Shown in pieces: positions 1,151-63,947 of a stretch of 64,000 bases of DNA. A program made the position numbers and the translations under genes. The stretch's first letter is position 1. Each line of letters starts with the position of its first letter. The notes beneath the pieces were generated by a model, which did no database searches, had not been told where the DNA came from, and saw only the letters and a list, made by a program, of their open reading frames with translations. Source of the DNA: Mytilus trossulus (lineage: Eukaryota). The DNA is taken from assembly GCF_036588685.1 (NCBI RefSeq), contig NC_086373.1, positions 77,190,001 through 77,254,000 of the forward strand, written 5' to 3'.

Positions 1151-2676
1151 AAGCGACCAAATGACCCCCGATCATGTGTTCAACAAAAGGAAAAGGCTAA
1201 TGTGCCTAGGACGGTCTGTCGTAAAAGACCCTTTCCCAGGATATGTTCTTCCTAGATCATCAATTTCATTCAAAGACGGCCGAACTAACACAGTTAAATA
1301 TTTTGAACTTTCACCTGATTTCATTTTATAATAGAAATGCAAAAAAAACAAAAATACATTTAAAGTAATAAGTAATAATTGCAAGATCCAATATCTTTAC
1401 CAAAACTCGAACCCCATCAAAACAGAGATGATCTCATGTGCTCCTTTTATATTAAAATTGAAAAAATCGAGTACTTTGGTTACTTTGTATTCACGAAAAT
1501 AATGATCAAGAAGTTCATTTCACCTAAACACGTGCCTTCACCAAAATCGCATGAATCTATTTTGTAAGTTGATATCTAAGTTATTTTCATAGTACATTTT
1601 TTCATTGTTGAACAATGATTTTACTGATTCTTACAATCCATGGAAACATTTTGCTATGTGTATCTATGGTGTTTGTCTGACAGTGTTAGTTCTCACTATT
1701 ATTTGAATAAATAAAATTTAGAAATTCGTATCTTATCACTTATTTATTCATCAAGGATATATTATATGCTCTGTAAGAAATTGTTGAATTAATTGGCACA
1801 TATTGAAGTACTCTAAAGATAAGATTACAATGTTGACAGACGAGAGGCATGTTTTCAAGATCTCGTGATTAGACAAACTATTTTCATTTATATGTTTGAG
1901 ATTCTCGTACAGTTTTATAAGATTGAAATCAGTTTAATGACATTAGTAGATTTTAATTCTCATACTTTGTTCATGTATATTATTTTTGCGATTTTCGTGC
2001 AATTCCATCAGTATATGAGATGCATGTAGGTTTTAAAACTCAAATGGGTTCCCTATTTGCCAAGAAAATTACTAAACAGTTACTTTTAACTATAAATAGT
2101 ATTTTTTTAATCATATTGTCAAATACAAGCATAACAGGGGGAATATTTCACATTAATTAGACCTCTGACATATGCATAATGTGGTGTAAACAATTCGGGT
2201 CTTTCAAGATGCTCAATCTTTTCATTGTTGTCTAATCAAAATAACTTAATTCAAGACAGACTTTGTTCAAGAATTTAGAAGTTAAGAATGAATCACAGGT
2301 ACATACATGACCTGTAACCGTCTTCAAACACACAAATCACGCCACATACTATCCTACCAAAACTGAAAGTAGTAGGGGACGATAATTGTATTATTCGGGT
2401 AGGTGGGGGAGGGTTACAGGATTTTTTTAAGATTGACCATTATGTGTAGTTTCATTTAGTTTCATCTGATGCTTATCATGCTTATTCATTATTTTTTTCA
2501 TTTTCACTTTTGAAGTTTTGTACACAACTGTTTTCTTCATGCAGATTTTTTATTTTATACTAGGTTTATGTCAAGTTATTCATTGAGCTATCACTAGGCG
2601 AGAATATTCATTTAAACCCCCCCCCCCCCACACACACAAGAAAATCAATGGTCGTTCCCTAATGAATTACGCTTAC

Positions 2677-3171
2677 CTTAGCTTCTCGGAATGCACCTAG
2701 GGTGTAGGTACCGCCTCCTTTATATCTTATATTAGGTAAATCATCATCAATTAAGGTACACTTGTGTTTTTCCTGCGGTTGTGGTGTTATATAATCTATC
2801 TGTCTCAGTACAAACCTCCGTGAGGAAAACGTTATCACAGCTATCTTTGTATGATTATTGTCCACTACAAAATCAGCTAATAGTTTCCGAACAAATTTTA
2901 ATTCATTACCAAAATTACTTTTTCCTACACTAGCCGAACTATCGACCAAGAAAATGAGATCAACCTTCGTTTCTGATGTTTTGCGAAGTAGATGTATATG
3001 TTTCTTCAACGCGGATCCTAACACTTCCACTTTGTCCTTCGAAGTTTGGTCAACGACTTTGTGTGAAGGTCCGAACGTCTCATGGTCCTCAAAATGGCCA
3101 TAACTAACTGTCCGATGGAATAGTAAAATAAACAGAAGAAATCGACATTGATTTATGAATTCCCAGTTCAT
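2677..3171 (-). CDS. SVEP1: First coding exon of SVEP1/polydom-like protein (signal peptide + N-terminal part of vWA domain); gene continues beyond the left edge
   Basis: ATG at 3171, hydrophobic signal-like segment FLLFILLF, vWA MIDAS motif LIFLVDSSASVG, then NFGNELKFVRKLL..IAVITFSS..HKC..I.YKGGGTYT.GAF, matching the vertebrate SVEP1 N-terminus as recalled. Phase-0 donor AAG|GTAAGC at 2677/2676. No downstream exon identified in 1-2676. Confidence 0.88.
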
Positions 3172-4990: not shown

Positions 4991-7900
4991 TTAATGAGTT
5001 TCTCCAGTAGGCGTAACCCGTACAAATGTATGTCCTGTATGAGTTTCTGGCTGTTTCCTATTTCCATTAAAGTTATCAATGCGATGTGAACTATCGGTTG
5101 GTGGATTGTTAACAGGGGGCATTTCCGGTCCCTTGAATCGATGTGACCTGTCGGTTGGTGGATGGTTAACAGGAGGCATTTCCGGTCCGTCGAATGGGGT
5201 ATCTACTCCTGTAGTCACTGGTTCCCTGTTCGAGTTTTCTTTGTCGCTATAATTTTGTGATTCTACATCGTTGTCATGGTAAACGTCACTGTAACCACCT
5301 AGTGTTCCAGCCATCGACTCAATTTCTCTGATCATTTGTGTTGTCTGTGGAAACGAAAATGTTAAGTTAGTTACAGAAAAACTCAGATGTCTGAATAATT
5401 TCTTTGACATAATTAATTAAAAAGATTGAATAGAGTTCTGAACAGATTTTCTACCACTGTAGCCTTGTTTGGTTTGTTTTATTTCTTTTCTGTTATGCAT
5501 ATGTACACTTTTAAAATTAACAAAAACAATACATGTACGTGATTTATGTGCGTGTAACCACACAGCAGTTGAAAACAGACAAAAATCAAGGATTATGACA
5601 TGTAGGTTTTAGTGATTTTGTCAAGTTGGAAATGTCACAGCAACGGTGCAAGTTATAGAGTTATTTCATGGAAATTGCTTTTATTTGTTTCTAGAAAATA
5701 ATTGAACAAATTAAACCTAATGTGAAACTAATATTTTGTAAAAATTCACATTCCGAATCAATATTAAATTTTTGTAGTTTATAATTTGATATACATATGT
5801 AATGTCTTATCAGCGCTATACAACGCTACGATATGATTTCAGAACGATTTAGTTACACGTCCCCAAATTATTGTATACTCGGCTTTGTACATACCCAGAC
5901 ATAAAAAGCAGTGCCAAGTGGACTCACGGTCTTGATAAAGTCCAAGGAATACTGGTCGGTATATTTTTTGGCATCAAGTGCGAATTCAAGTGGACACATT
6001 GAAGGATCAAATCTTGCCATCTTATTTTGGATAGAGTCATTGTCCATTTTCCATAAAATACCTTGGGTAGTCGACCAATCCTAAATAGAAAAAAAATTGT
6101 TACAGGGCATTTTATACGCAACCATGAACACATAGTTACCTTGACCATGTTCATTTTTTTGAATTGTAAACTAACGAACAATTAGAGGGTGTAGTGTTGC
6201 CAATCTTATATAATCCTTATTAAAAACTAAATGTGCAAACATTGTTTTTATCTTCATAAAATTGAGAATGGAAATGGGGAACGTGTCAAAGAGACAGCAA
6301 CCCGACTAAAGAATAAGAAAGGGCCGAATGCCACTAATGGGTCTTCAACACAACGAGAAGATCCCGCAACAGGAGGTGTGCTTCAGCTGCACAGATGTAT
6401 TTCTTTGCAGATATTACCTTCCATCTCTTTTCATACTTCTTCGTTTTCCGTCTGCTTTTCGATTTTCGATTTGATCAAGACTTGTGCTCTATCTATCTTT
6501 TTATATTTATATTGAATGTACATGTATTAAAATAAATTGTTAAAATGCTTAGTAACAAATTTCTATACTACTAGTACTTAAAAAGAGTCCAATTTGTTGA
6601 CCGGGATGACGTAACAACGACGAATCAAACTGCGGCATACAATTCAGGAGCACCTGCGTTCGTTCTCCTCAGGTGTTTTGTCGGGTTCGTGTTGCTTAAT
6701 CTTTAGTTTTCCGTACTATGTTTAGTGATTTGATGCTTATTTGTGTTTTTACCTATGGTCATGGTGTTGTCTTTTTATTTTCGATTTAAGAATTTCATTT
6801 GATCCCTCGGTATCTCCTCAAAATATTTTAGTCATTCAAGTACATGTACATAATATATATGTATACATATAAATGCATATTTTGTGTGATTTTTATACAT
6901 CCTGTACTGATTTAGTGTCATCATAAATGGATACCCCATATCGCTTGGTTTTCTGTCATATTTCTATTGATACTTTTGGCAAACCAGAACGCTTCAAATC
7001 TTACCTCTACAACATATGACGGGAATCCCAGTAAGACCAGTGTTGCCATTAGCGAGTGTTTTACAGGTTTGGGTGGGTTGGCATACTTTCTACCTTCCCC
7101 TATAGCCTTGCCGTCAGCATCCATGATAGTCTCTCTTATTCTATGTATCATTTTAAGTCTGTTTAGTAATCGCTTTGCATGCATGACTTCAAACTGAAGT
7201 GACCCATCGACGTCAGCTATCTGAGCCAATGCAATCCCTCTCTCTACATCTTGTATGTTTCTAGATTCATAGGCATCAAGAAGCACTAGTAGGTGAAGAT
7301 TGAAAAATATATTAAATTGTATATATTTATATAAATGAACACGCAGTATTTTAGAAATCTTAATATTTTTGTTCTGATCCAAACATCACTCTTATTTCAT
7401 TAAATCGACTAATTTGAGCGCTAACTTGTGTCTTTTCGTAAACAATTTCAACTGCCAAAACAAATGTGACCAAGCTCTGAAAGTCTTTTATGGAAGCCAA
7501 AAGGAAGACCATCCATCATCTATTATATAAATCAAAGTATATAATGAACAATATTAAAATTCATATTAGGAACTACATTTAACATATGCATCTTATTTTA
7601 TAAAAGCTATTAAAAGAATCTCTCAAAAAATAAAAAAATCCAAAACAAAAACCACGATGTTTACTTGGAAAATGTGATAGTAAGTTTATGATTTGTGAAA
7701 TAAAAGAATTTATTCTTGAAAATGGCTGTTAAAGATTTATAACTTACCTTGCCTTGCTTCAAGTTTCTTAGCCATTCGTTTGACATTTATTAACATAGAG
7801 TCGTCGATATCTGGGTTCTGATCTTCGTATTTGTATATTAGATTATTCAGAACTTCCGGGTCTTTATAGTATTCTGCCTCCCTCATTTTCTTTCTCATAT

Positions 7901-10900
7901 ACTCTTTTCGTTTTTCTGAAGTTAATAAAATGTGTTTTTATTCATTCAGTGTATATTGTATACTTTAGTCCATTCGATTAGTCATTGCAACCGTTGATTG
8001 TATCCAATCTAAGAAGATCATGTATTGTTTATGTATGGTTTTGAAAATTTTGCTCAAAATAGTTTTGATGCCAGTTCGTTTTGACCTAAGCTTTAGTTGT
8101 TAAAGTGTTTGATGTTCACATATAAAGGAAACAATAGAAATACATCTACCGCTTTTACTTCAAAATTACGAATTTCCAGCTCCTCAATTACCACAGTACT
8201 TCCTTAGCTAACAGAATCATTCGCTTTGCTGCCGGTTGTGATTTCACTTAATTAAATCCTCAAAAGTCTACCTATTTGGCCCAAAAATTGCTAAATGTCA
8301 TCCCCACGTGCTGCCAAGTTACTTTGATGCCGATCATCAAGTTTCGCCATTTAAAGTCAAAATCAGTTAACTCGCAGTTTTGGTTTTCAAGTCATTATTC
8401 AAGAGCTTACACATCAAGCATCCATGTCAAGTCTTCTTTACTTTTGTACTATATTTAATCAGAACAATGAATAAAATCAAATGTAAGATATACGTCAATG
8501 AAACAACAGCCAGTAAGATTTGGATGTTGTTTTATCTTTCTGAACCCCACACTTTGTAATCTCAATTTTATTAAAGGGGGGGTGTCATTGAACATCATGA
8601 TTAGGCTGAATTATTGGTTGTAAAAAATCTCAAACTTTAGCGAAAATACAAAAATAAAACAGTTTGCAGATTCTTCATTGTGGTTTATCATAATTAATAG
8701 CTTACCGTTTATGTCATCTTGGTCTAGATCCGGTGTTTTGGAGTAGAGAGGAAAGTCCTCCTCCATCACATCTTCATTAGAACTTTCCTCTGTGGCGGTA
8801 GTTATAAAATATTTGTTAATTGTTTTGATGAGGTTTCCATCATTTCTCTGAAATACGTTCACTGCACAGTAATTGACATCTGGTACTGTAACTTTGAACA
8901 AAACCTCGTCATCAACAATGACTTTTTCAATGGCACTTGTTTTCTGAGGACCATTTCCTTGATTTGTATCTAAATAAGCAACTAATTCATATGGAGATTC
9001 CGGGTAAGGTAGGTACACTTCTTTTTCTATTGCCTCTATTGTCTCAATGGGAATTATATGTTTTCCATGCCAAAATCCTTTATTGTCCCCAATTGCTAAA
9101 CGTGGAGAGAAAACACTATCACCAATACTGCCCGTTGAGTGAATCAATGAAGTATATACAGTGTACAGCTTGGTTATATCATTGTCCTTGTGTGTGTAAA
9201 CAGAGAAGAAATATTCTCCGGCAACTGGTAATATATAATGGACGCTTTCTATTCCATGTTCATTTTTTATAATCAAATTCACCCGCTTCATGGCCTCGGG
9301 ATCATTTGAGTGTATTTCATACATTAAAGAATCACTCATCATCTCGGAACAGAAATGTATTTTACCCCTTCCCTTACCAGCGGTAGCAATTCCATTTTCT
9401 TTATCTAGAACTCTAATACCCAAACTTTTTGCCAAAACCGCTTCACCCAGCATAGTTTGACTAAGAATCGGAAACGGTTCGTCGTTCGGCTTCTTACATC
9501 TGCACCGAATGAGATAATTCAATAGATTAGACTTGCCTGGTTCTGTTGTCTTTCCGTACAGTTTCATTGCGTAATAACCATCTTTAGGTAGCCTTAAATT
9601 TAAAATGTACTCGCCGTCATGCCAACGTAGTGTAGAATATTGAGACAATGTTCCTTCGTCCAATATTCTGTGTTTTAACCTCACATTTAAGTTTAAATTC
9701 TTTTGACCCTGGAATTTTAGCTCCAAGTGTCCATTGTCTGTACTAATTTTAGACAATTTATGACTAATTGGTTTTAAACCAACCTTGTCTGATTGTTTGT
9801 TCTGACCCCAGCCAAGTTCCGGGTGATCCGGAAGCGGGATCTCTATTCTTGGCGGCATTGGACTGTATACTATGTAAGAACATATGAGGTCAAATTCTCT
9901 CACTGCTCGAAACAAAGGATTTTTAGCAAAAAGATCTAATCTGAATTGACCATATACAGGAATATTGATATCTATCTCTAGAATGTCACCTTTAACCTCC
10001 CATTCGACACAATGTTCCAATGATCCGTCGTCGTCTTCTTTACAAAATGCGGTCGACTTTGATCGATAAAAATTATATCTGAACCCAAGTTTTGCTGCCC
10101 AACGCCGTGGAAGCTTCAAATCTAAGGAAACTTTTCCTTGTTTTGTTTTGTGTTTGCACTGAACGTTGTGTTTTCCTTCGAATCCAATTCCGAGTTCATA
10201 CAATCTTTCTCTGACATAAACTCTTTTCTCAAATTCAAGAAACGGTAGTTGTTTTTCAACAAGTTGCCAGTCTTCGTCGTCAGGTAAATGTGTCCAAAGA
10301 AGGTCACGTGGATCAGTCAGGAAATAACAGTCATCGGCATCTTCAGTATGTTTCATTTGTTTGAATTTTTTCATATCTAATTTCTTTCGTTTTACTTTCG
10401 GCTTGACTGTTTCACTTTTATTTTGTTCAGAATTATCTTTGTTGCTTTTGATATCACCATTTTCCAGTCTATTTTCCGTACGGTTGTCCTCTGGGCCTTT
10501 GTCAGGTACCATTTCTTTTCCGTTTACAAGGAAAGGTACAGGAGATTTAACATCCATTTCGTCATCTTGGTTTTTATCATAACTGTTCTTATTTATAGCA
10601 ATCTTTTTCGCCTCGCCTGAGTTCAATTCAACACAAGTGGATGCCCAAAACAAATCTACAAGCCGCCATTCACCATCGATTAAAACGGCATTCCATTGTG
10701 CCTTTGTTCTTCTTTTGTTAATTTTTTCACCAATCTTAAACGCTGAGCTTTTTGCAATACCGTCAATGATAACGCATGGTACGTCTGCCAACCTGGAATA
10801 CATCTTACTTTCAGAAGAATCGGGAAAATGTCAAAAACTTCACAAATAAAGATATCAAAGAATCTAAGTAATACACGTTCAAGATTTAATATTTTTTTTC

Positions 10901-12878
10901 AACTTGTAATTAAAATGCTATTTAGCGCTATGCATTCATGAAGTAGATAGACAGTTTTGTTACAATGCCGCAAATTTTATTTGATAAAGTTAATGCCGAC
11001 ATAGATTTTGTACGAACGTACTTCCCTGAACCAGCAAAATATTATAAACATACAAAACTTCAAATATAATTGTTATCTCTTTCTTGATCATTTTTTTTAA
11101 TCTCACTTTTTTTTTTGCATTATTAATTCGGTTACATTAGAATCGTTGGTTTAAATAAAATCACTCGAATATTTAGTACTAGAAGAATACTTACTGGCAT
11201 AAAACATAGAAAAGATTGGCATAGTTTCCCATATCACACTGTATTTTAGAGAAATATTCCAACGGTGAGTTAGGTGGTGGGATGAAGTCGATGGGTAAAC
11301 TTTTTATATTGTATGAAGTGATCCATTTGTAAATAGAGCGTACTTTCCACAGATCCTCCCATGTATCGTCATCTGTTAAATATTTTACCAGATCCCAATA
11401 AGACTTTAGCAATAATTCATTCGGTGCCTGTTTACAAAGAAGAAAACTATATTGTTTGGCTTTATTTATATCTCATCTTATATTGAATATCATAGATTAT
11501 AAAATATTGTTACCGAAATTTAAAGTGAGCAGGATAACCTTGTCCTGTTGACAATCTTTTTCGGGTTCATATGACTCTTAGTGTTAAATGCCGATTTCAT
11601 CTGAGTTTTTAGAGTTTGATGCTTGACTTTACTCATCTGACATGAATTCTTTCGGGGTTTTTTTCTCGGTAAAGTTGATGCAGATAAATTATTTTGGTGT
11701 AGACAATATCTAAAAACACGAATAAGTAATTACGTTATGACATAGGGGCAACTCGAGGGATTTTTCACTTTTTTAAAGTGATCAGATCAATCTCGGTTTT
11801 AAAAAAAATGTAAATGTTCATCCCTCAACAAATAGTTTTGATTTATGAATAAATACGCCGTCCAGTTAGAACCCATTGCAGTCATAGTTAGATCGTGAAG
11901 CATCAATACATTATTTTTATAATGTATGTATTTTCCTAAAAGAGTTGAATTGAATGGTTATTTTTGTATTGAGCATAATATGTAACTGGTATTTATATAG
12001 TAAATAGAGTATGCTGAGTTGTCTTACATTAAAAGCATGCTCATCAATTATGGTAAAATTCAGATCTTCAATTAATTCTTCCTTGGTTGACTTTGGAGGT
12101 GATGGTGGTGGCGGTTCGCCTCGTTTTAATTTCTTCTTGGGTTTTGGTTTGGTACCAATCAACTGCAGGAAAATAAAACGTCAATAGAATCAAAATGTAT
12201 TTATATTCTATTCCAAGTGTGTCAGTTTTTCAAATTTTAGTATGCATTTTATCGATAATATTTTCTATTTTAAAAAAAGATCATTGAATAATCATCTGAA
12301 CTAAATGACATAGTCATGTATTTTATCGCTGTGTTGAAGATTCGTTGATTTTTTTGTTGTTTTTTTTTTTTTTTTTTTTTTGCTCTTTGATTGGGTTGTT
12401 ATATCTTTGACAAATTCCCGTTTCCATTATTAATTTTATTAAACATTTTGCTGATCCTAGCTTTGACCTCCTATGTTTTCAGAAAGTATAAATCATCGTT
12501 AGTTTAAGATATGATCAAGTGAAAAGGTATGTAATGTTGAGAGCAACAAAAACTCCAGCGAGGTGGCCAGATGTCTTTTCTAGCCGATCAGATCTATTAA
12601 GTATAAAAGTGTATAGAAAGCTTAGAAATAAGATAAAGTATGATCATATATACCTTTTTCGTATTTGGTTTAGAAGTGCCCACATGCTTCTTCAAGATAC
12701 CGTCTTTTGGTTTGGTTTTATCCTCCTTTGTTTTCTTGATCCCGCCATTTTGTGCCCTCGCATTTGTCTTATTTAGTATCTGCTTATTTCTGCCATGCTG
12801 TGGTTTGGTTACAAATTTCACTTTATTTTTAATAACTTGCTGAGATTTATTATCAGGAGATGATGATGAACTCCCCAT
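4991..12878 (-). CDS. Paralog 1: KY/hillarin-like pseudo-transglutaminase, 4 Ig-like repeats, dynein-type MTBD (8 exons, about 1222 aa)
   Basis: Exons with GT-AG boundaries: 12878-12654, 12162-12028, 11427-11195, 10792-8706, 7915-7748, 7285-7005, 6080-5895, 5344-4991; sum 3669 nt, in frame. Starts MGSSSSS. TG-like motifs VRSIYKWIT, YANLFYVLCQLADVPCVIIDG, QWNAVLIDGEWRLVDLFWA, YFLTDP..LLWTHLPDDEDWQL. MTBD-like YANPPKPV..LVLLG..DW..FDP..VSPLGTAFYVW. Confidence 0.85.
6257..6390. repeat. Short interspersed repeat (family B)
   Basis: aaaattgagaatggaaatgggg..gtgtcaaagagaca.caacccgac..atgggtcttcaa; copies at 48080-48225 and, reversed, at about 28490-28575 and 12325-12435. Confidence 0.7.
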
Positions 12879-14060: not shown

Positions 14061-14920
14061 TTTTTAGCTCACCTGGCCTTAAAGGCCATGTGAGCTTTTC
14101 TCATCACTTGGCGTCCGTCGTCGTCGTCGTCGTCGTCGTTAACAATTTTTCAAACATCCTCTCCTCTGAAACTACTGAATGGATTTGAATGAAACTTAGC
14201 ATGATTGTTCCTTAGATTATTCTGCACAAAGTTTGTGCTTCGGTTTTTGATCCGTCAAAAAACATGGCCGCCGTTACTTAAAATAGAACATAGGGGTCAA
14301 ATGCAGTTTTTGGCTTATATCTCAAAAACGAAAGCATTTAGAGCAAATCTGACATGGGGTAAAAATGTTCATTAGGTCAAGATCTATTAGCCCTGAAATT
14401 TTCAGATAAATCAACAAACCATTGTTGGGTTGCTTCCACTTAATTGGTAATTTTAAGGAAATTTTGCAGTTTTTGGTCATTATCTTGAATATTATTATAG
14501 ATACAGATAAACTGTTTAAAGCAAAAATGTTAAGCAAAGTAAGATCTACAAATAAGTCAAATTGACCAAAATTGTCAATTGACCCCTTAAGGAGTTATTG
14601 CCCTTTAAAGATTTTTTTCACAATTTGTTCATCATGTTGACTTACTTTGAAAACTGCTGTATCAATTTCAGCCAAACTTAGGCTAAATGAGTTTCAGAGT
14701 ATCTAGTATAAATTTATATTTTATTTCCTTGCATGTCAAGAAACATAGCTCCTATGGCTAAAATAGAACATAGGAGAACATTTTTTTTTTTTTGCTTTTG
14801 AAGAAAAAAGGATGATTCAAAGAACATTTAAATAAATTGAAAAGCCAAAATAATCATTGATGAGAGATTAAACCAAAAAAATTAAGGTGAGCGATTCAGG
14901 CTCTTGAGAGCCTCTTGTTT
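14061..14920 (+). mobile_element. Non-autonomous Helentron-type element (HINE/DINE-1-like)
   Basis: T-run, then agctcacctggcc..ggccatgtgagc hairpin, (GTC)n microsatellite, one internal unit homologous to those at 40878 and 58158, sub-terminal IR aggtgagc, terminal palindrome aggctct..agagcct, then T-run. Confidence 0.75.
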
Positions 14921-40877: not shown

Positions 40878-41986
40878 AACTAGAGGCTCTAAAGAGCCTG
40901 TGTCGCTCACCTTGGTATATGTGAATATTCAACAAAGGACACGGATGGATTCGTGACAAAATTGTGTTTTGGTGATGGTGATGTGCTTGTAGATCTAACT
41001 TTACTGAACATTCTTGCTGCGTACATATATCACCATCTATAATGATTGGCCCAGTAGTTTCAGTTGAAAGTGTTAGTAAAAATTTACAAATTTTATGAAA
41101 ATTGTTAAAAATTGACTATCGATTTGTCTGAAATTTTCAGGGCAGATAGATCTTGACATGATAAACAATTTAACCCCATGCCAGTTTTGCTCTTAATGCT
41201 TTTGTTTTTGAGTTATAAGCCAAAAACTGCATTTTACCCCATGTTCTATTTTTAGCCATGGTCGCCATCTTGGTTGGTTTGACGGGTCAACGGACACAAT
41301 TTTTAAACTAGATACCCCAATGATGATTGTGGCCAAGTTTGGTTAAATTTGGCCCAGTAGTTTCAGAGGAGAAGATTTTTGTAAAAGATTAATAAGATTT
41401 ACGAAAAATGGTTAAAAATTTACTTTAAAGGGCAATAACTCCTAAAGGGGTCATTTGACCATTTCGGTCATGTTGACTTATTTGTAAATCTTATTTTGCT
41501 GAACATTATTGCTGTTTACAGTTTATCTCTATCTATACTATTATTCAAGATAATAACCAAAAACAGCAAAATTTCCTTAAAATTACCAATTTAGGGGTAG
41601 CAACCCAACAACAGGTTGTTCGATTCATCTGAAATTTTCAGAGCAGATAGATCTTGACCTTATAAACAATTTTACCCATGTCAGAATTGCTCTAAATGCT
41701 TTGGTTTTTGAGTTATAAGCCAAAAACTGCATTTTACCCCTATGTTCTATTTTTAGCCATGGCGGCCATCTTGGTTGGTTGACCGGGTCACCGGACACAA
41801 TTTTTAAACTAGATACCCCAATGATGATTGTGGCCAAGTTTGGTTTAATTTGGCCCAGTAGTTTCAGAGAAGAAGATTTTTGTAAAAGTTAACGCCGGAC
41901 GCAGGACGACGACGGACGACGACGGACGCTGGACGCAAAGTGATGAGAAAAGCTCACTTGGCCCTTCGGGCCAGGTGAGCTAAAAA
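40878..41986 (-). mobile_element. Non-autonomous Helentron-type element (HINE) with internal ~501-bp tandem units
   Basis: aactagaggctctaaagagcctgtgtcgctcacct at one end; (GAC)n and ctcacttggcccttcgggccaggtgagctaaaaa at the other. Unit marker ttggcccagtagtttcag at about 41046, 41349 and 41850. Confidence 0.8.
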
Positions 41987-42493: not shown

Positions 42494-43307
42494 GTGTGCA
42501 ATACTAAATATTATTATATGTATTCAAGTCCGTGAAACATGAAGCGCCATTATATCTTACTGAACTTGTAAATTTATACAGGCCATCAAGATCATTAAGG
42601 TCTGAAAACAACTTAACACTCGTAACTCCTATTGTGCGAACCAAAACCTACGGCAATAGAAGATTTGATCAAGCTGCGGCCATCCTTTGGAATGCATTAC
42701 CAAAAGAACTTCAAAATGCAAAGTCGGTGCCTGTATTCAAAAAGAACTTAAAAACTCACTTTTTTCGACAAGCATTTTTAATCCCTTAAATTCGTTTCTG
42801 TGATACATAGTGCCATAGACGTTAGCCTGCTTTTGATTTATCGAACCTTTCTTTTAACTGGAGATATGTTTCATTTATAATATGTACATTGTATGTTTTA
42901 GTAGCACACATATGTTTTCATTTCAGTAATTATATTTTTACGTGGTAATATTCCTTTTTCATCTTTTGAATACGTTTTCAAATTTTTAACTTATATTTGA
43001 TAATTTTTAATAGCAATCTTATTTTAGACTTTTTTGGCTATTTTATTTTACCAACTTTATTCAGTATAATTTTATTTTGATTCATTAATATATATATTCC
43101 ACTTTTTTTGTAAAAAAATCCACATTATTAATCCTTTTATCTAGAAAAGTTTTAACACTTAAATATTTATTTTGTGTGTTCATGTTTTATATTTTTATCA
43201 CTGTCTGTGTGTATATTTCGTTTAACATGTGATGTAAAGCGCTTTGAGTAATATTGTTTTAGATTTAGCGCTATAAAAAAATTGTAATAATAATAATAAT
43301 AATAATA
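42494..43307 (+). mobile_element. 5'-truncated L2/CR1-group LINE (ORF2 C-terminus, 3' UTR, (TAA)n tail)
   Basis: ORF 42532-42789 AP.YL.EL..Y.PSRSLRS..KTYG.R.F..AA..LWN.LP..FKK.LKTHFF..AF is the typical L2/CR1 ORF2 end. 3' stem-loop tgtaaagcgctttgag..tttagcgctata, then (taa)8. Flanked by attacaa at 42487-93 and 43308-14. Confidence 0.8.
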
Positions 43308-55379: not shown

Positions 55380-56554
55380 TACGGGGCGCCGAATGGGACT
55401 CTTGTGGTTTTGTACTCGAAATTCAATTTTGTACGGACAAAAGTGACTTTTTTATTCAACAAAAATGAGTTCAGTTTAACAAAATTTGTAACATACTACA
55501 AATTTAAAATTTTGTCATACAAAATTATCTTTCAGTGGACAAAAGTTATTTTTTGTCATGACAAAACTCATTTTTGTGAGACAAAATTGACTTTGTGAGA
55601 CAAAATTGACTTTTGTGAGACAAAATTGACTTTTGTGAGACAAAATTGACTTTTGTTAGACAAAATTAACTTTTGTGAGACAAAATTGACTTTTGTGAGA
55701 CAAAATTGACTTTTGTGAGACAAAATTGACTTTTGTGAGACAAAATTGACTTTTGTGAGACAAAATTGACAAAATTCAATTTGGTCTCACAAAATTGAGC
55801 CAAAATTCAATTTTATCAATTTTGTCTCACTAAAGTAATTTTTGTCTTCACAAAATTGACTTTTGTGAGACAAAATTTACTTTTGTTAGACAAAATTGAC
55901 TTTTGTGAGACAAAATTGACTTTTGTGAGACAAAATTGACTTTTGTGAGACAAAATTGACTTTTGTGAGACAAAATTGACTTTTGTGAGACAAAATTGAC
56001 AAAATTCAATTTGGTCTCACAAAATTGAGCCAAAATTCAATTTTGTCAATTTTGTCTCACTAAAGTAATTTTTGTCTTCACAAAATTGAATTTTGTCTTC
56101 ACAAAATTGAATTTTGTCTTCACAAAATTGAATTTTGTCTTCACAAAATTGAATTTTGTCGTCATAAATTGAATTTTGTCTTCACAAAATACAAAATCGA
56201 CTTTTGTGAGACAAAATTGAATTTTGTTGTCACAAAAATGAATTTTGTCTCACAAAATTGAATTTTGTCTTCACAAAATTGAATTTTGTCTTTTGTGAGA
56301 AAAATTGACAAAATTGAATTTTGTCTCACAAAAGTCAATTTTGTCTCACAAAAGTCACTTTTGTCTCACAAAAGTCACTTTTGTCTCACAAACTCAATTT
56401 TGTCTCACACAATTGACTTTTGTGTTTTAATTTTTAAAATTGAAGTTCTCATAAGAGAAGTCTGTATCACATGGTTTCGTAAGACAACAATGATTTTTTT
56501 ATGACAGAATTGAATTTTGTACAAAACAACAGGAGTCCCATTCGGCGCCCCGTA
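55380..56554. mobile_element. Foldback-like MITE with ~36-bp TIRs, 5-bp TSD (CGAGG) and internal 20-bp satellite arrays
   Basis: cgagg|TACGGGGCGCCGAATGGGACTCttgtggttttgtac ... gtacaaaacaacagGAGTCCCATTCGGCGCCCCGTA|cgagg; interior of gagacaaaattgacttttgt tandem units and their reverse complements. Confidence 0.85.
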
Positions 56555-62690: not shown

Positions 62691-63947
62691 CTATGATCGT
62701 CTTTTCTTCCTTCCTTTTGACTGTTTCGCTGCTCCCGTCACTGGATCTTCTTCCTGTCTTCCGCCTGTAGATTCTACTTCTTCAATCATTCCCTTTGCCT
62801 AGAAAGATTATAAATTTGTTTAAAAACAACTTAAATACTTTGTATTCATACAATTCACGTATCAAGTGATCAAACGATGATATTTTTCGATTGACGCCCA
62901 GTTGCAAATATTACATGCATATGAAGACGATAACAATTTAATGTAAAAATAGATCTGAGCCTCGGTTTATAAATGACCAAAACAACTGGTCTGTATTTCT
63001 AACGTGCTAGTTCTTACATTAACAGTCCGCAAGAAGACATCCACGCTATCTAGAAACATTGCTCTGACTCCGAGTTGACCAGTATTTGCTCTTACTTCTA
63101 ATTGTAGCATGTTTAGAAGATCATGTATTTTTTACGTGTTATTTTTGTTGAATGATAACATTAGCATACTAACCCAGACAAAAAACGTCGCTGCACCAGC
63201 ACTGACATCTCTTATATGTTCGAGAGTGTAATCTGCAATGACCTTTTTGGACTGTACAGCTGCGGCTAAGAAACAATCCTTGGGGTCAAACTTCTGAATC
63301 TTTCTCATGACAGATTCTCTTCCAGTTTTACCCAGAATGCTCTGGCATGTTCTCCACACCTGAAATGATGCAATACTAGTATGTTAATAAAAGTTAACTG
63401 ATAGCACAGTGACAAAAACTTATAATTGAGAATAGAAATGTTTGAATGTATATCAGTATGCCATGTAAAATTATTATGAATCCTCTTCTCAAGGTAGATC
63501 CCGATACTAAGGGAGATAACAACGTCATTTATTTTCAAAGTCTTAATTTGCAATAGACAGATTCGTCCAGTTTTCACAACGTAAGACAAAGAATTTGTTC
63601 TAATAATACAATATGTATATTAAATAGAGAAACCGAGAGTGTATACGAAATGAAATAAACTCTCACCTTAACTTCTTTCAGTGGATGTCCTAATAACAAG
63701 AATGCTCCCATCAGTGACTGATGTACACCCTCTGGTGGGTTAGAATAGGTCCTGATCTCAGCAATAGTCTTCTGGTCCATGTTCAACACTGAATGACGAA
63801 GTTTTTCTATTCTAGCTAACTGGTCACGGAGTCTTTGTGCAACAACTATTTGTAAGTCCAACTGATTGTCAAAGTTGGCTGCCTTTGCTCTAGCAAGTGC
63901 TTTATCAATGGCATCCACTTCTCTCCTCTGTGCTGCATTTTGCAGTT
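62691..63947 (-). CDS. Paralog 5 (partial): last three exons encoding helical repeat + dynein-type MTBD + short basic tail; 5' part lies beyond the right edge
   Basis: Exons 63947-63667 (281 nt), 63359-63174 (186 nt), 62798-62691 (stop TAG); the first two have the same sizes and phases as exons 6-7 of the other paralogs. KTIAEIRTYSNPPEGVHQSLMGAFLLLG..VWRTCQSIL..KFDPKD..YTLEHIRDVSAGAATFFVWAKGMIEEVES..KGRKKRRS*. Confidence 0.85.

Follow-up and report, generated by a model that had tools for sequence, protein, structure and literature searches.

A dynein-type microtubule-binding domain at the C-terminus of tandemly encoded KY/transglutaminase-like proteins of the mussel Mytilus trossulus

The stalk tip of dynein heavy chains is formed by a microtubule-binding domain (MTBD; PF12777, "MT"; structures 3ERR, 5AYH, 6RZB, 6KJO and 8I3J), in which six helices, H1 to H6, are located between the antiparallel coiled-coil helices CC1 and CC2. 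To our knowledge, and in the literature that could be searched, the MTBD has so far been regarded solely as a component of dynein heavy chains. Proteins of the KY, hillarin and Cyk3 type (PF01841 plus PF23265) contain a transglutaminase-like core followed by KY-type Ig-like domains. Here, we analyzed a 64-kb stretch of the Mytilus trossulus genome (1.3 Gb, 33% GC; G000:C1:77190001-77254000), referred to as the window, in which a map of open reading frames (ORFs) shows five KY/transglutaminase-like genes in tandem, all in minus orientation. A domain resembling the dynein MTBD is encoded by the three terminal exons of every gene.

The mussel domain has the same arrangement as that of dynein, and the two have in common the E-I/V-R/K...N/T-P-P turn, the LLG sequence ending H2, the Trp of H3, the F-D of H4 and the S-x-G/A-A...W signature of H6. 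Unlike the dynein MTBD, it is located outside an AAA+ ring, at the C-terminus of non-motor proteins and on a stalk of 2-4 heptads; its basic H1 and H6 residues are shifted, its identity to dyneins is about 14-21%, and the Mytilus copies score below the Pfam threshold. It also differs from the axonemal dynein MTBD in lacking the "flap".

Exon by exon, the window proteins are 76-99% identical to the product of M. galloprovincialis LOC143051045 (RefSeq model P0001, 1203 amino acids (aa)). Mapping of P0001 by tblastn shows that paralog 1 consists of eight collinear exons and that the domain falls in exons 6-8, as had been stated in the original prediction, which was made from the DNA letters. Paralogs 1-4 are complete in the window; paralog 5 is present as its 3' end only, and its KY exons lie just beyond the window edge. 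The peptide quoted in that prediction is identical to the translation of exons 6-8 of paralog 5, and the exon coordinates of the other four paralogs fit the approximate ranges given there for the same domain. The MTBD-like exons are the following.

63945-63667 (-): paralog 5 exon 6, 93 codons; helical repeat, CC1-like helix, H1, NPP turn and H2; splice cag/gtgaga
63359-63174 (-): paralog 5 exon 7, 62 codons; MTBD helices H3-H6; splice cag/gttagt
62798-62694 (-): paralog 5 exon 8, 35 codons and then TAG; short CC2-like helix (AKGMIEEVEST) and basic tail
47408-47130, 46706-46521, 45230-45099 (-): paralog 4 MTBD-like exons, from translation, splice sites and alignment
31674-31396, 30964-30779, 30291-30109 (-): paralog 3 MTBD-like exons, from translation, splice sites and the M. 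coruscus orthologue P0075
19678-19400, 18849-18664, 18331-17354 (-): paralog 2 MTBD-like exons, from translation and splice sites; the last one has a long, lysine-rich, low-complexity tail
7283-7005 (7286 with the split codon), 6080-5895, 5344-4994 (-): paralog 1 MTBD-like exons, from tblastn with P0001 and splice sites

The structure of these exons is the same in all five paralogs: a phase-1 acceptor is followed by the 93 codons of exon 6, phase-0 boundaries flank the 62 codons of exon 7, and AG/GT is present at every exon boundary, at conserved positions. The length of the tail exon varies. Over the MTBD exons, the paralogs are 33-48% identical in pairwise comparisons, and two sets of residues are invariant among them: exon 6 has E..Y..PP..V...L.G, and exon 7 has W, FD, Y, S and W. 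This level of identity, together with the shared invariant residues, indicates that the five paralogs are old duplicates kept by purifying selection. In several orthologues (P0017 816-862, P0020 790-839, P0022 797-843 and P0029 745-785), a second copy of the first ~50 residues of exon 6 (L..A...R.......AI..A.......L......A..L...L) is located immediately before the MTBD, giving a helical-hairpin repeat that runs into CC1.

Homology was searched exon by exon, and spliced database proteins were used as stand-ins for the Mytilus copies: P0001 (76-99% identical to paralog 1), P0075 (81-97% to paralog 3) and P0098 (56% to exon 6 of paralog 5). When exon 6 of paralog 5 alone was compared with the PDB using phmmer, 20 of the 25 matches were dynein heavy chains aligned at CC1/H1/H2 (best E-value 0.0018); the weak matches included spectrin repeats of alpha-actinin. 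For a profile of the five exon 6 copies (A2), the first 41 PDB matches were all dynein heavy chains, covering H1-H2, with E-values down to 1.2e-4. The profile of the five exon 7 copies (A3), searched independently, had the Chlamydomonas dynein heavy chain 8glv_Fm as its top PDB match: its positions 1-62 align to residues 2874-2934, and exon 6 matches the immediately preceding segment of that chain, 2793-2872. The same adjoining matches of the two profiles were found in DNAH6. In an all-against-library HMMER search, the exon 6 profile detected 668 proteins at E <= 0.001, and both halves of the MTBD were found in 59 of the relatives compared.

A profile of the full domain (A4) was built from 15 short database relatives. 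All of its 47 PDB matches were dyneins, with alignments running from H1 into CC2, and the best E-values were 4e-11 for the yeast dynein-1 MTBD and about 1.5e-10 for DNAH6 and a Chlamydomonas dynein heavy chain. Cytoplasmic dynein-1, DNAH6-type inner-arm dyneins and dynein-2 gave comparable scores, and no source class is singled out. Pfam MT matched 8 of the 15 relatives at E < 0.1. The ESM Atlas neighbours of residues 990-1120 of P0001 are mollusc clusters, and PF12777 is present in 25 of the 30.

To assess the fold, we used an AlphaFold model of P0075 (M. coruscus, 221 aa), based on an alignment of 125 sequences; this protein is 81-97% identical to exons 6-8 of paralog 3. The mean pLDDT (predicted local distance difference test) is 84, with values above 90 through the domain. 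The model consists of two N-terminal helices, a CC1 of 28 residues (32-59), six short helices (63-71, 77-89, 94-107, 115-120, 129-139 and 144-150) and a CC2 of 28 residues (152-179), and thus contains the six-helix globular domain on an antiparallel CC1/CC2 hairpin. No flap insertion is present between H2 and H3 in this model (cf. PMC6629372). When VIA-align was run against 48,161 chains, the mouse dynein stalk 5ayh ranked first (Z 16.6); the mouse MTBD 3err was aligned with Z 16.5 and a root-mean-square deviation (rmsd) of 1.9 Å over 126 residues at 21% identity, and the MTBDs of DNAH1, the outer-arm gamma heavy chain and dynein-c came next; 8i3j was aligned with Z 14.1. Unrelated helical proteins reached Z <= 8, covering the N-terminal helices only. 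Nearly all of the top 50 Foldseek matches were also dyneins, with template modelling (TM) scores of 0.68-0.73 and rmsd values of 2.3-2.7 Å for isolated MTBDs.

These results can be set against the possibility that the resemblance is due to chance or to composition, such as a coiled-coil bias. The single-exon E-values are indeed modest (0.0018 and 0.016), and alpha-actinin spectrin repeats are among the weak matches. However, two exons independently match adjoining dynein segments, the full-domain profile reaches 4e-11 with dynein matches only, and the structural match (Z 16.5, rmsd 1.9 Å) is well above background. Chance resemblance is therefore considered excluded. The homology, as proposed in the original prediction, is borne out by the profiles, the structure check with AlphaFold and Foldseek and the language-model neighbours, and we conclude with high confidence that the domain is a genuine homologue of the dynein heavy-chain MTBD.

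Several weaker fold matches of the P0075 model were observed as well: a chain of a Toxoplasma intraconoidal-microtubule microtubule-associated protein (Z 9.1, 125 residues), a chain of the bovine sperm axoneme (Z 10.1) and Chlamydomonas radial-spoke chains (the chains of this weaker set being 9ya2_L, 9fqr_Xl, 9e5c_2e, 7jtk_C and 7jrj_I). They are possible further non-dynein MTBD-like folds, with scores that are within the noise of helical proteins.

Full-length proteins carrying the domain have 900-1,900 aa, whereas dynein heavy chains exceed 4,000 aa. Pfam detected only PF23265 and PF01841 in them and did not find an AAA+ ring, a linker or a long stalk. The CC2 of the model is longer than the CC2-like helix of paralogs 1, 2 and 5, which has ~12 residues before a Gly-Gly or Ala-Gly, and the stalk is therefore a stub of 2-4 heptads. 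The proposed absence of the motor parts thus holds for the AAA+ ring; the stalk is not wholly gone, as a CC1/CC2 stub of about that length is kept.

The next question is whether the domain and the KY part belong to one protein. The upstream exons and predicted starts in the window are listed here.

12878-12651 (-): paralog 1 exon 1, starting MGSSSSS; tblastn of P0001
12165-12025 (-): paralog 1 exon 2; tblastn of P0001
11427-11194 (-): paralog 1 exon 3, first part of the transglutaminase-like core; tblastn of P0001
10794-8701 (-): paralog 1 exon 4, remainder of the core and KY Ig-like domains; tblastn of P0001, Pfam PF23265 and PF01841
7919-7749 (-): paralog 1 exon 5, helical linker; tblastn of P0001
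27140 (-): paralog 2 candidate start MGSNESK
25278-24982 (-): paralog 2 transglutaminase-like exon
~24252-22492 (-): paralog 2 large exon
38556 (-): paralog 3 candidate start MGNIGGK
36758-36525 (-): paralog 3 transglutaminase-like exon
~36297-34945 (-): paralog 3 large exon (ORF 36129-33979)
55001 (-): paralog 4 candidate start MGSNLSS
53198-52953 (-): paralog 4 transglutaminase-like exon
~52471-50864 (-): paralog 4 large exon (ORF 52369-50312)

The upstream exons of paralog 1 (12878..7749) are 87-99% identical to P0001 by tblastn. The order KY core, Ig-like domains, helical repeats and MTBD is modelled in molluscs, annelids, a brachiopod, a bryozoan and amphioxus. Such gene models are present in Mytilus, Saccostrea, Ostrea, Tegillarca, Solemya, Pinctada and Mizuhopecten, and also in Lottia, Lymnaea, Bulinus, Haliotis, Lingula, Paralvinella, Dimorphilus, Watersipora and several Branchiostoma species. 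Among the relatives listed, the MTBD is always located within ~10-60 residues of the C-terminus.

Gene prediction could have joined two genes, in which case the MTBD-like exons would constitute a separate small gene between the KY genes. Databases do contain stand-alone fragments, such as P0075 (221 aa, M. coruscus), as well as many exon-sized ORFs, and independent small genes encoding an MTBD behind an MGCG start exist in molluscs. On the other hand, exon 6 cannot be a first exon because it starts in phase 1 after an AG and lacks an ATG of its own, and this is the case in all five copies. In addition, P0001 joins all eight exons collinearly, the fusion is modelled independently in five phyla including amphioxus, and the order KY-then-MTBD recurs five times, on the same strand and with regular spacing. 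We thus regard an artefact of the gene models as very improbable. The splicing of the MTBD exons to the KY/transglutaminase exons, on which the original prediction depended, is supported by the gene models across the five phyla, and so is the presence of KY and MTBD in one predicted protein.

PF23265, the KY Ig-like domain, scores 118.8 bits in P0001 and up to 488 bits in amphioxus, and its E-values in MTBD-bearing proteins range from 1e-34 to 1e-148. The mussel proteins differ from vertebrate KY in that they lack the catalytic Cys and His, and have in addition an N-terminal acylation motif and the C-terminal MTBD. Vertebrate KY, which has no MTBD, reads G-V-C-C-G-Y-S, H-[ML]-W-N-A-V and D-A-C-W, so that Cys, His and Asp are intact. 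The MTBD-bearing proteins read D-M-G-N-Y-A (with F, L, I, T, Q or K also found at the Cys site), A/S-Q-W-N-A-V and D-L-F-W. In all in-window paralogs, the catalytic Cys is replaced by Met, Phe or Leu and the His by Ala or Ser, and the Asp is kept; neither Cys nor His is retained in any of the MTBD-bearing relatives that were examined.

Vasohibins have a transglutaminase-like fold and act on tubulin tails. By analogy with these tubulin carboxypeptidases, an active KY core might be brought to tubulin by the MTBD, and the joining of a transglutaminase-like fold to a tubulin-binding module is what such a targeted enzyme would look like. The replacement of the catalytic Cys and His in all MTBD-bearing proteins examined, against the intact triad of vertebrate KY, makes this explanation very improbable, and an active tubulin-modifying enzyme was rejected because the nucleophile is missing. 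The loss of both residues means that the KY core is a pseudo-enzyme, which probably serves as a protein-binding module, and a role as a vasohibin-like tubulin peptidase is unlikely.

At the other end, most full-length relatives begin with MG[SC]xx[ST], an N-myristoylation motif, and often have a Cys at position 3 that could be palmitoylated; an MG start is present in about 45 of the listed models, most full-length ones among them. The starts MGSSSSS, MGSNESK and MGSNLSS of paralogs 1, 2 and 4 fit the motif fully, and that of paralog 3 (MGNIGGK) is incomplete, with Gly at position 6.

The module is not confined to KY proteins. Small mollusc proteins with an MGCG start (290-400 aa; e.g., from Lottia, LOTGIDRAFT_228104, and Haliotis asinina) have the module at their end too. 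These resemble the mussel proteins in having helical repeats, a C-terminal MTBD, a basic tail and an acylation motif, but they differ in that they lack the KY and Ig parts and are encoded by separate genes, and some of them reach the Pfam MT threshold and have been named automatically after dynein. In the amphioxus (Branchiostoma) proteins P0204, P0207 and P0252, KY is combined with up to eight KY Ig-like domains and a CARD, and an MTBD-like domain is located at the C-terminus; the tunicate protein P0162 (Styela clava) has a VWA domain plus an MTBD-like domain. Therefore, the module reaches the invertebrate chordates. The ENA proteins P0141, P0219 and P0190 contain 4-5 or more tandem MTBD-like copies (Pfam MT 90-152 bits), and P0141 also has an N-terminal Hemingway/CFAP97 domain; as predicted from their sequences, this is a multi-MTBD, non-motor architecture.

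We propose the following model for the mussel proteins. A protein of ~1,000-1,200 residues would start with a myristoylation-type motif (MGxxxS/T), continue with a basic stretch of low complexity, the KY/transglutaminase-like pseudo-enzyme core, KY-type Ig-like domains and helical repeats, and would end in an MTBD (H1-H6, no flap) on a coiled-coil stub of 2-4 heptads and a short basic or disordered tail. As there is no AAA+ ring and a stub stalk cannot be shifted, the stalk registry would not slide, the MTBD would be held in one fixed state, and binding to the tubulin intradimer groove would be independent of nucleotide. With the lipid anchor at the other end, membrane and KY/Ig partners would be tethered to microtubules (e.g., at cortical, axonal or ciliary sites), and the inactive KY core, together with the Ig-like domains, would serve as a spacer or bind partners. 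We consider a KY pseudo-enzyme with a C-terminal MTBD that acts as a nucleotide-independent membrane-to-microtubule tether the best overall explanation, with a probability of roughly 60%. Taken on its own, microtubule tethering by a putatively lipid-anchored protein is a step for which we see the odds as even.

Several observations weigh against this explanation. The first concern Pfam. The MT profile has 344 positions, of which about 95-215 correspond to the MTBD, and a gathering threshold of 24 bits. P0001 has no Pfam MT match, P0075 scores 18.4 bits against the cut-off of 24, and a six-frame scan of the whole genome with PF12777 listed real dynein genes and not this locus. Single Mytilus exons also gave no MT match against Pfam, the exons being too short for a profile of this length. 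P0036 (16 bits) and P0017 (13.5 bits) are likewise below the threshold, which is reached in some relatives, namely P0147, P0240, P0242 and P0244 (precomputed matches) and P0141, P0190 and P0219. The sub-threshold scores of the Mytilus proteins explain why the locus has not been annotated as containing an MTBD. A significant profile match was thus obtained with A4 (4e-11), but not with PF12777 itself in the Mytilus proteins. Second, the H1 "KK" of cytoplasmic dynein reads "DQ" (DQK) here, and the basic residue located two positions before the conserved Ser of H6 in dyneins is Asp, Ser or Thr, with a basic residue one position earlier; the tubulin interface may hence differ from that of dynein. 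Third, the model is nearer to unbound or low-affinity MTBDs (3err, rmsd 1.9 Å) than to the bound 3j1t (4.2 Å), and the comparison of 6kjo (2.3 Å) with 6kjn (2.6 Å) is in the same direction, both being weak evidence. Finally, N-myristoylation is a motif match only.

The main competing explanation holds that the MTBD fold was kept and its ligand changed, for example to another cytoskeletal polymer such as septins or actin, to an LC1-like partner or to the domain itself, so that the proteins would be cortical scaffolds off microtubules. Charged residues of H1 and H6 are shifted or replaced at positions that, like those of H3, we take to be tubulin contacts in dynein; the invariant residues are mostly core and structural; and the domain occurs in several non-motor architectures (KY, CARD, VWA). 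However, conservation extends over all six helices and covers the surface-exposed motifs E-I-R of H1 and W-K/R of H3, which HMMER alignments show to be kept as in dyneins, and none of the results points to an alternative ligand. Trypanosomatid axonemal dyneins read D-P-K at the site of the H1 DQK. Moreover, microtubule binding is retained by divergent axonemal MTBDs whose H1 sequences are similar (PMC6629372). On balance, a changed ligand appears unlikely, though it is a more serious contender than the alternatives discussed above, and the membrane-to-microtubule tether is the explanation that we prefer.

With respect to the origin of the module, exon shuffling from dynein via a shared intron was considered. 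In two Mytilus dynein genes (G000:C2:8692250-8692720 and G000:C5:41582220-41582640), a phase-2 intron precedes the H3 Trp by 1-3 codons; the corresponding intron of the KY-type MTBD is in phase 0. The introns are near but not identical, and this comparison thus gives no evidence of exon shuffling.

A number of other features were observed in the window. A complex minisatellite of 20-21-bp units is present at 55510-56425, in the interval that separates paralog 5 from paralog 4 and a short distance upstream of the paralog 4 candidate start; it contains a 230-bp higher-order repeat with 92% identity. The ORF at 2659-3171 (-), downstream of paralog 1, has a signal-peptide-like start and a VWA domain motif (DLIFLVDSSASVG...), and is a separate gene whose product is probably secreted. 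Two intergenic ORF fragments in inverted orientation, at 14205-14375 (+) and 41625-41837 (-), share WPP.LKIEHRG.MQFLAY.SKTKAFRA and look like a dispersed repeat. The ORF at 42532-42789 (+) resembles what we take to be the conserved C-terminal tail of a retroelement ORF.

In the searchable literature, we found no paper that links KY or hillarin to an MTBD or that describes non-dynein MTBDs. The supposed novelty of the combination thus stands as far as publications are concerned, with the qualification that a few relatives already have automatic dynein-like labels, such as [quoted passage not shown] (Candidula) and "cytoplasmic dynein 2 heavy chain 1-like" for a Haliotis asinina protein of 356 aa. 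Given these labels, the resemblance has been latent in databases and yet uncharacterised. Membrane- or cortex-to-microtubule linkers provide a functional analogy only: they follow the same logic of an anchor plus a lattice binder, with unrelated folds, and we know of none that uses a dynein-type MTBD.

In a wider sense, the dynein MTBD may also occur outside motors, as an autonomous and mobile module that, combined with N-terminal acylation, would form an unrecognised class of nucleotide-independent membrane-to-microtubule tethers (of KY, MGCG, CARD and VWA types), present in lophotrochozoans and invertebrate chordates and lost in vertebrates, with naturally "registry-locked" MTBDs. We put this generalization forward tentatively, at somewhat less than even odds. 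If it is true, these proteins would allow the control of microtubule affinity by stalk registry to be studied in a naturally occurring system, and could provide a compact microtubule-lattice binder as a tool. The domain would be movable between genes, which bears on the origin of the dynein stalk. The poorly understood KY/hillarin-like pseudo-enzymes of invertebrates would gain a concrete cytoskeletal role. The five-gene tandem array indicates that the family is expanding in mussels.

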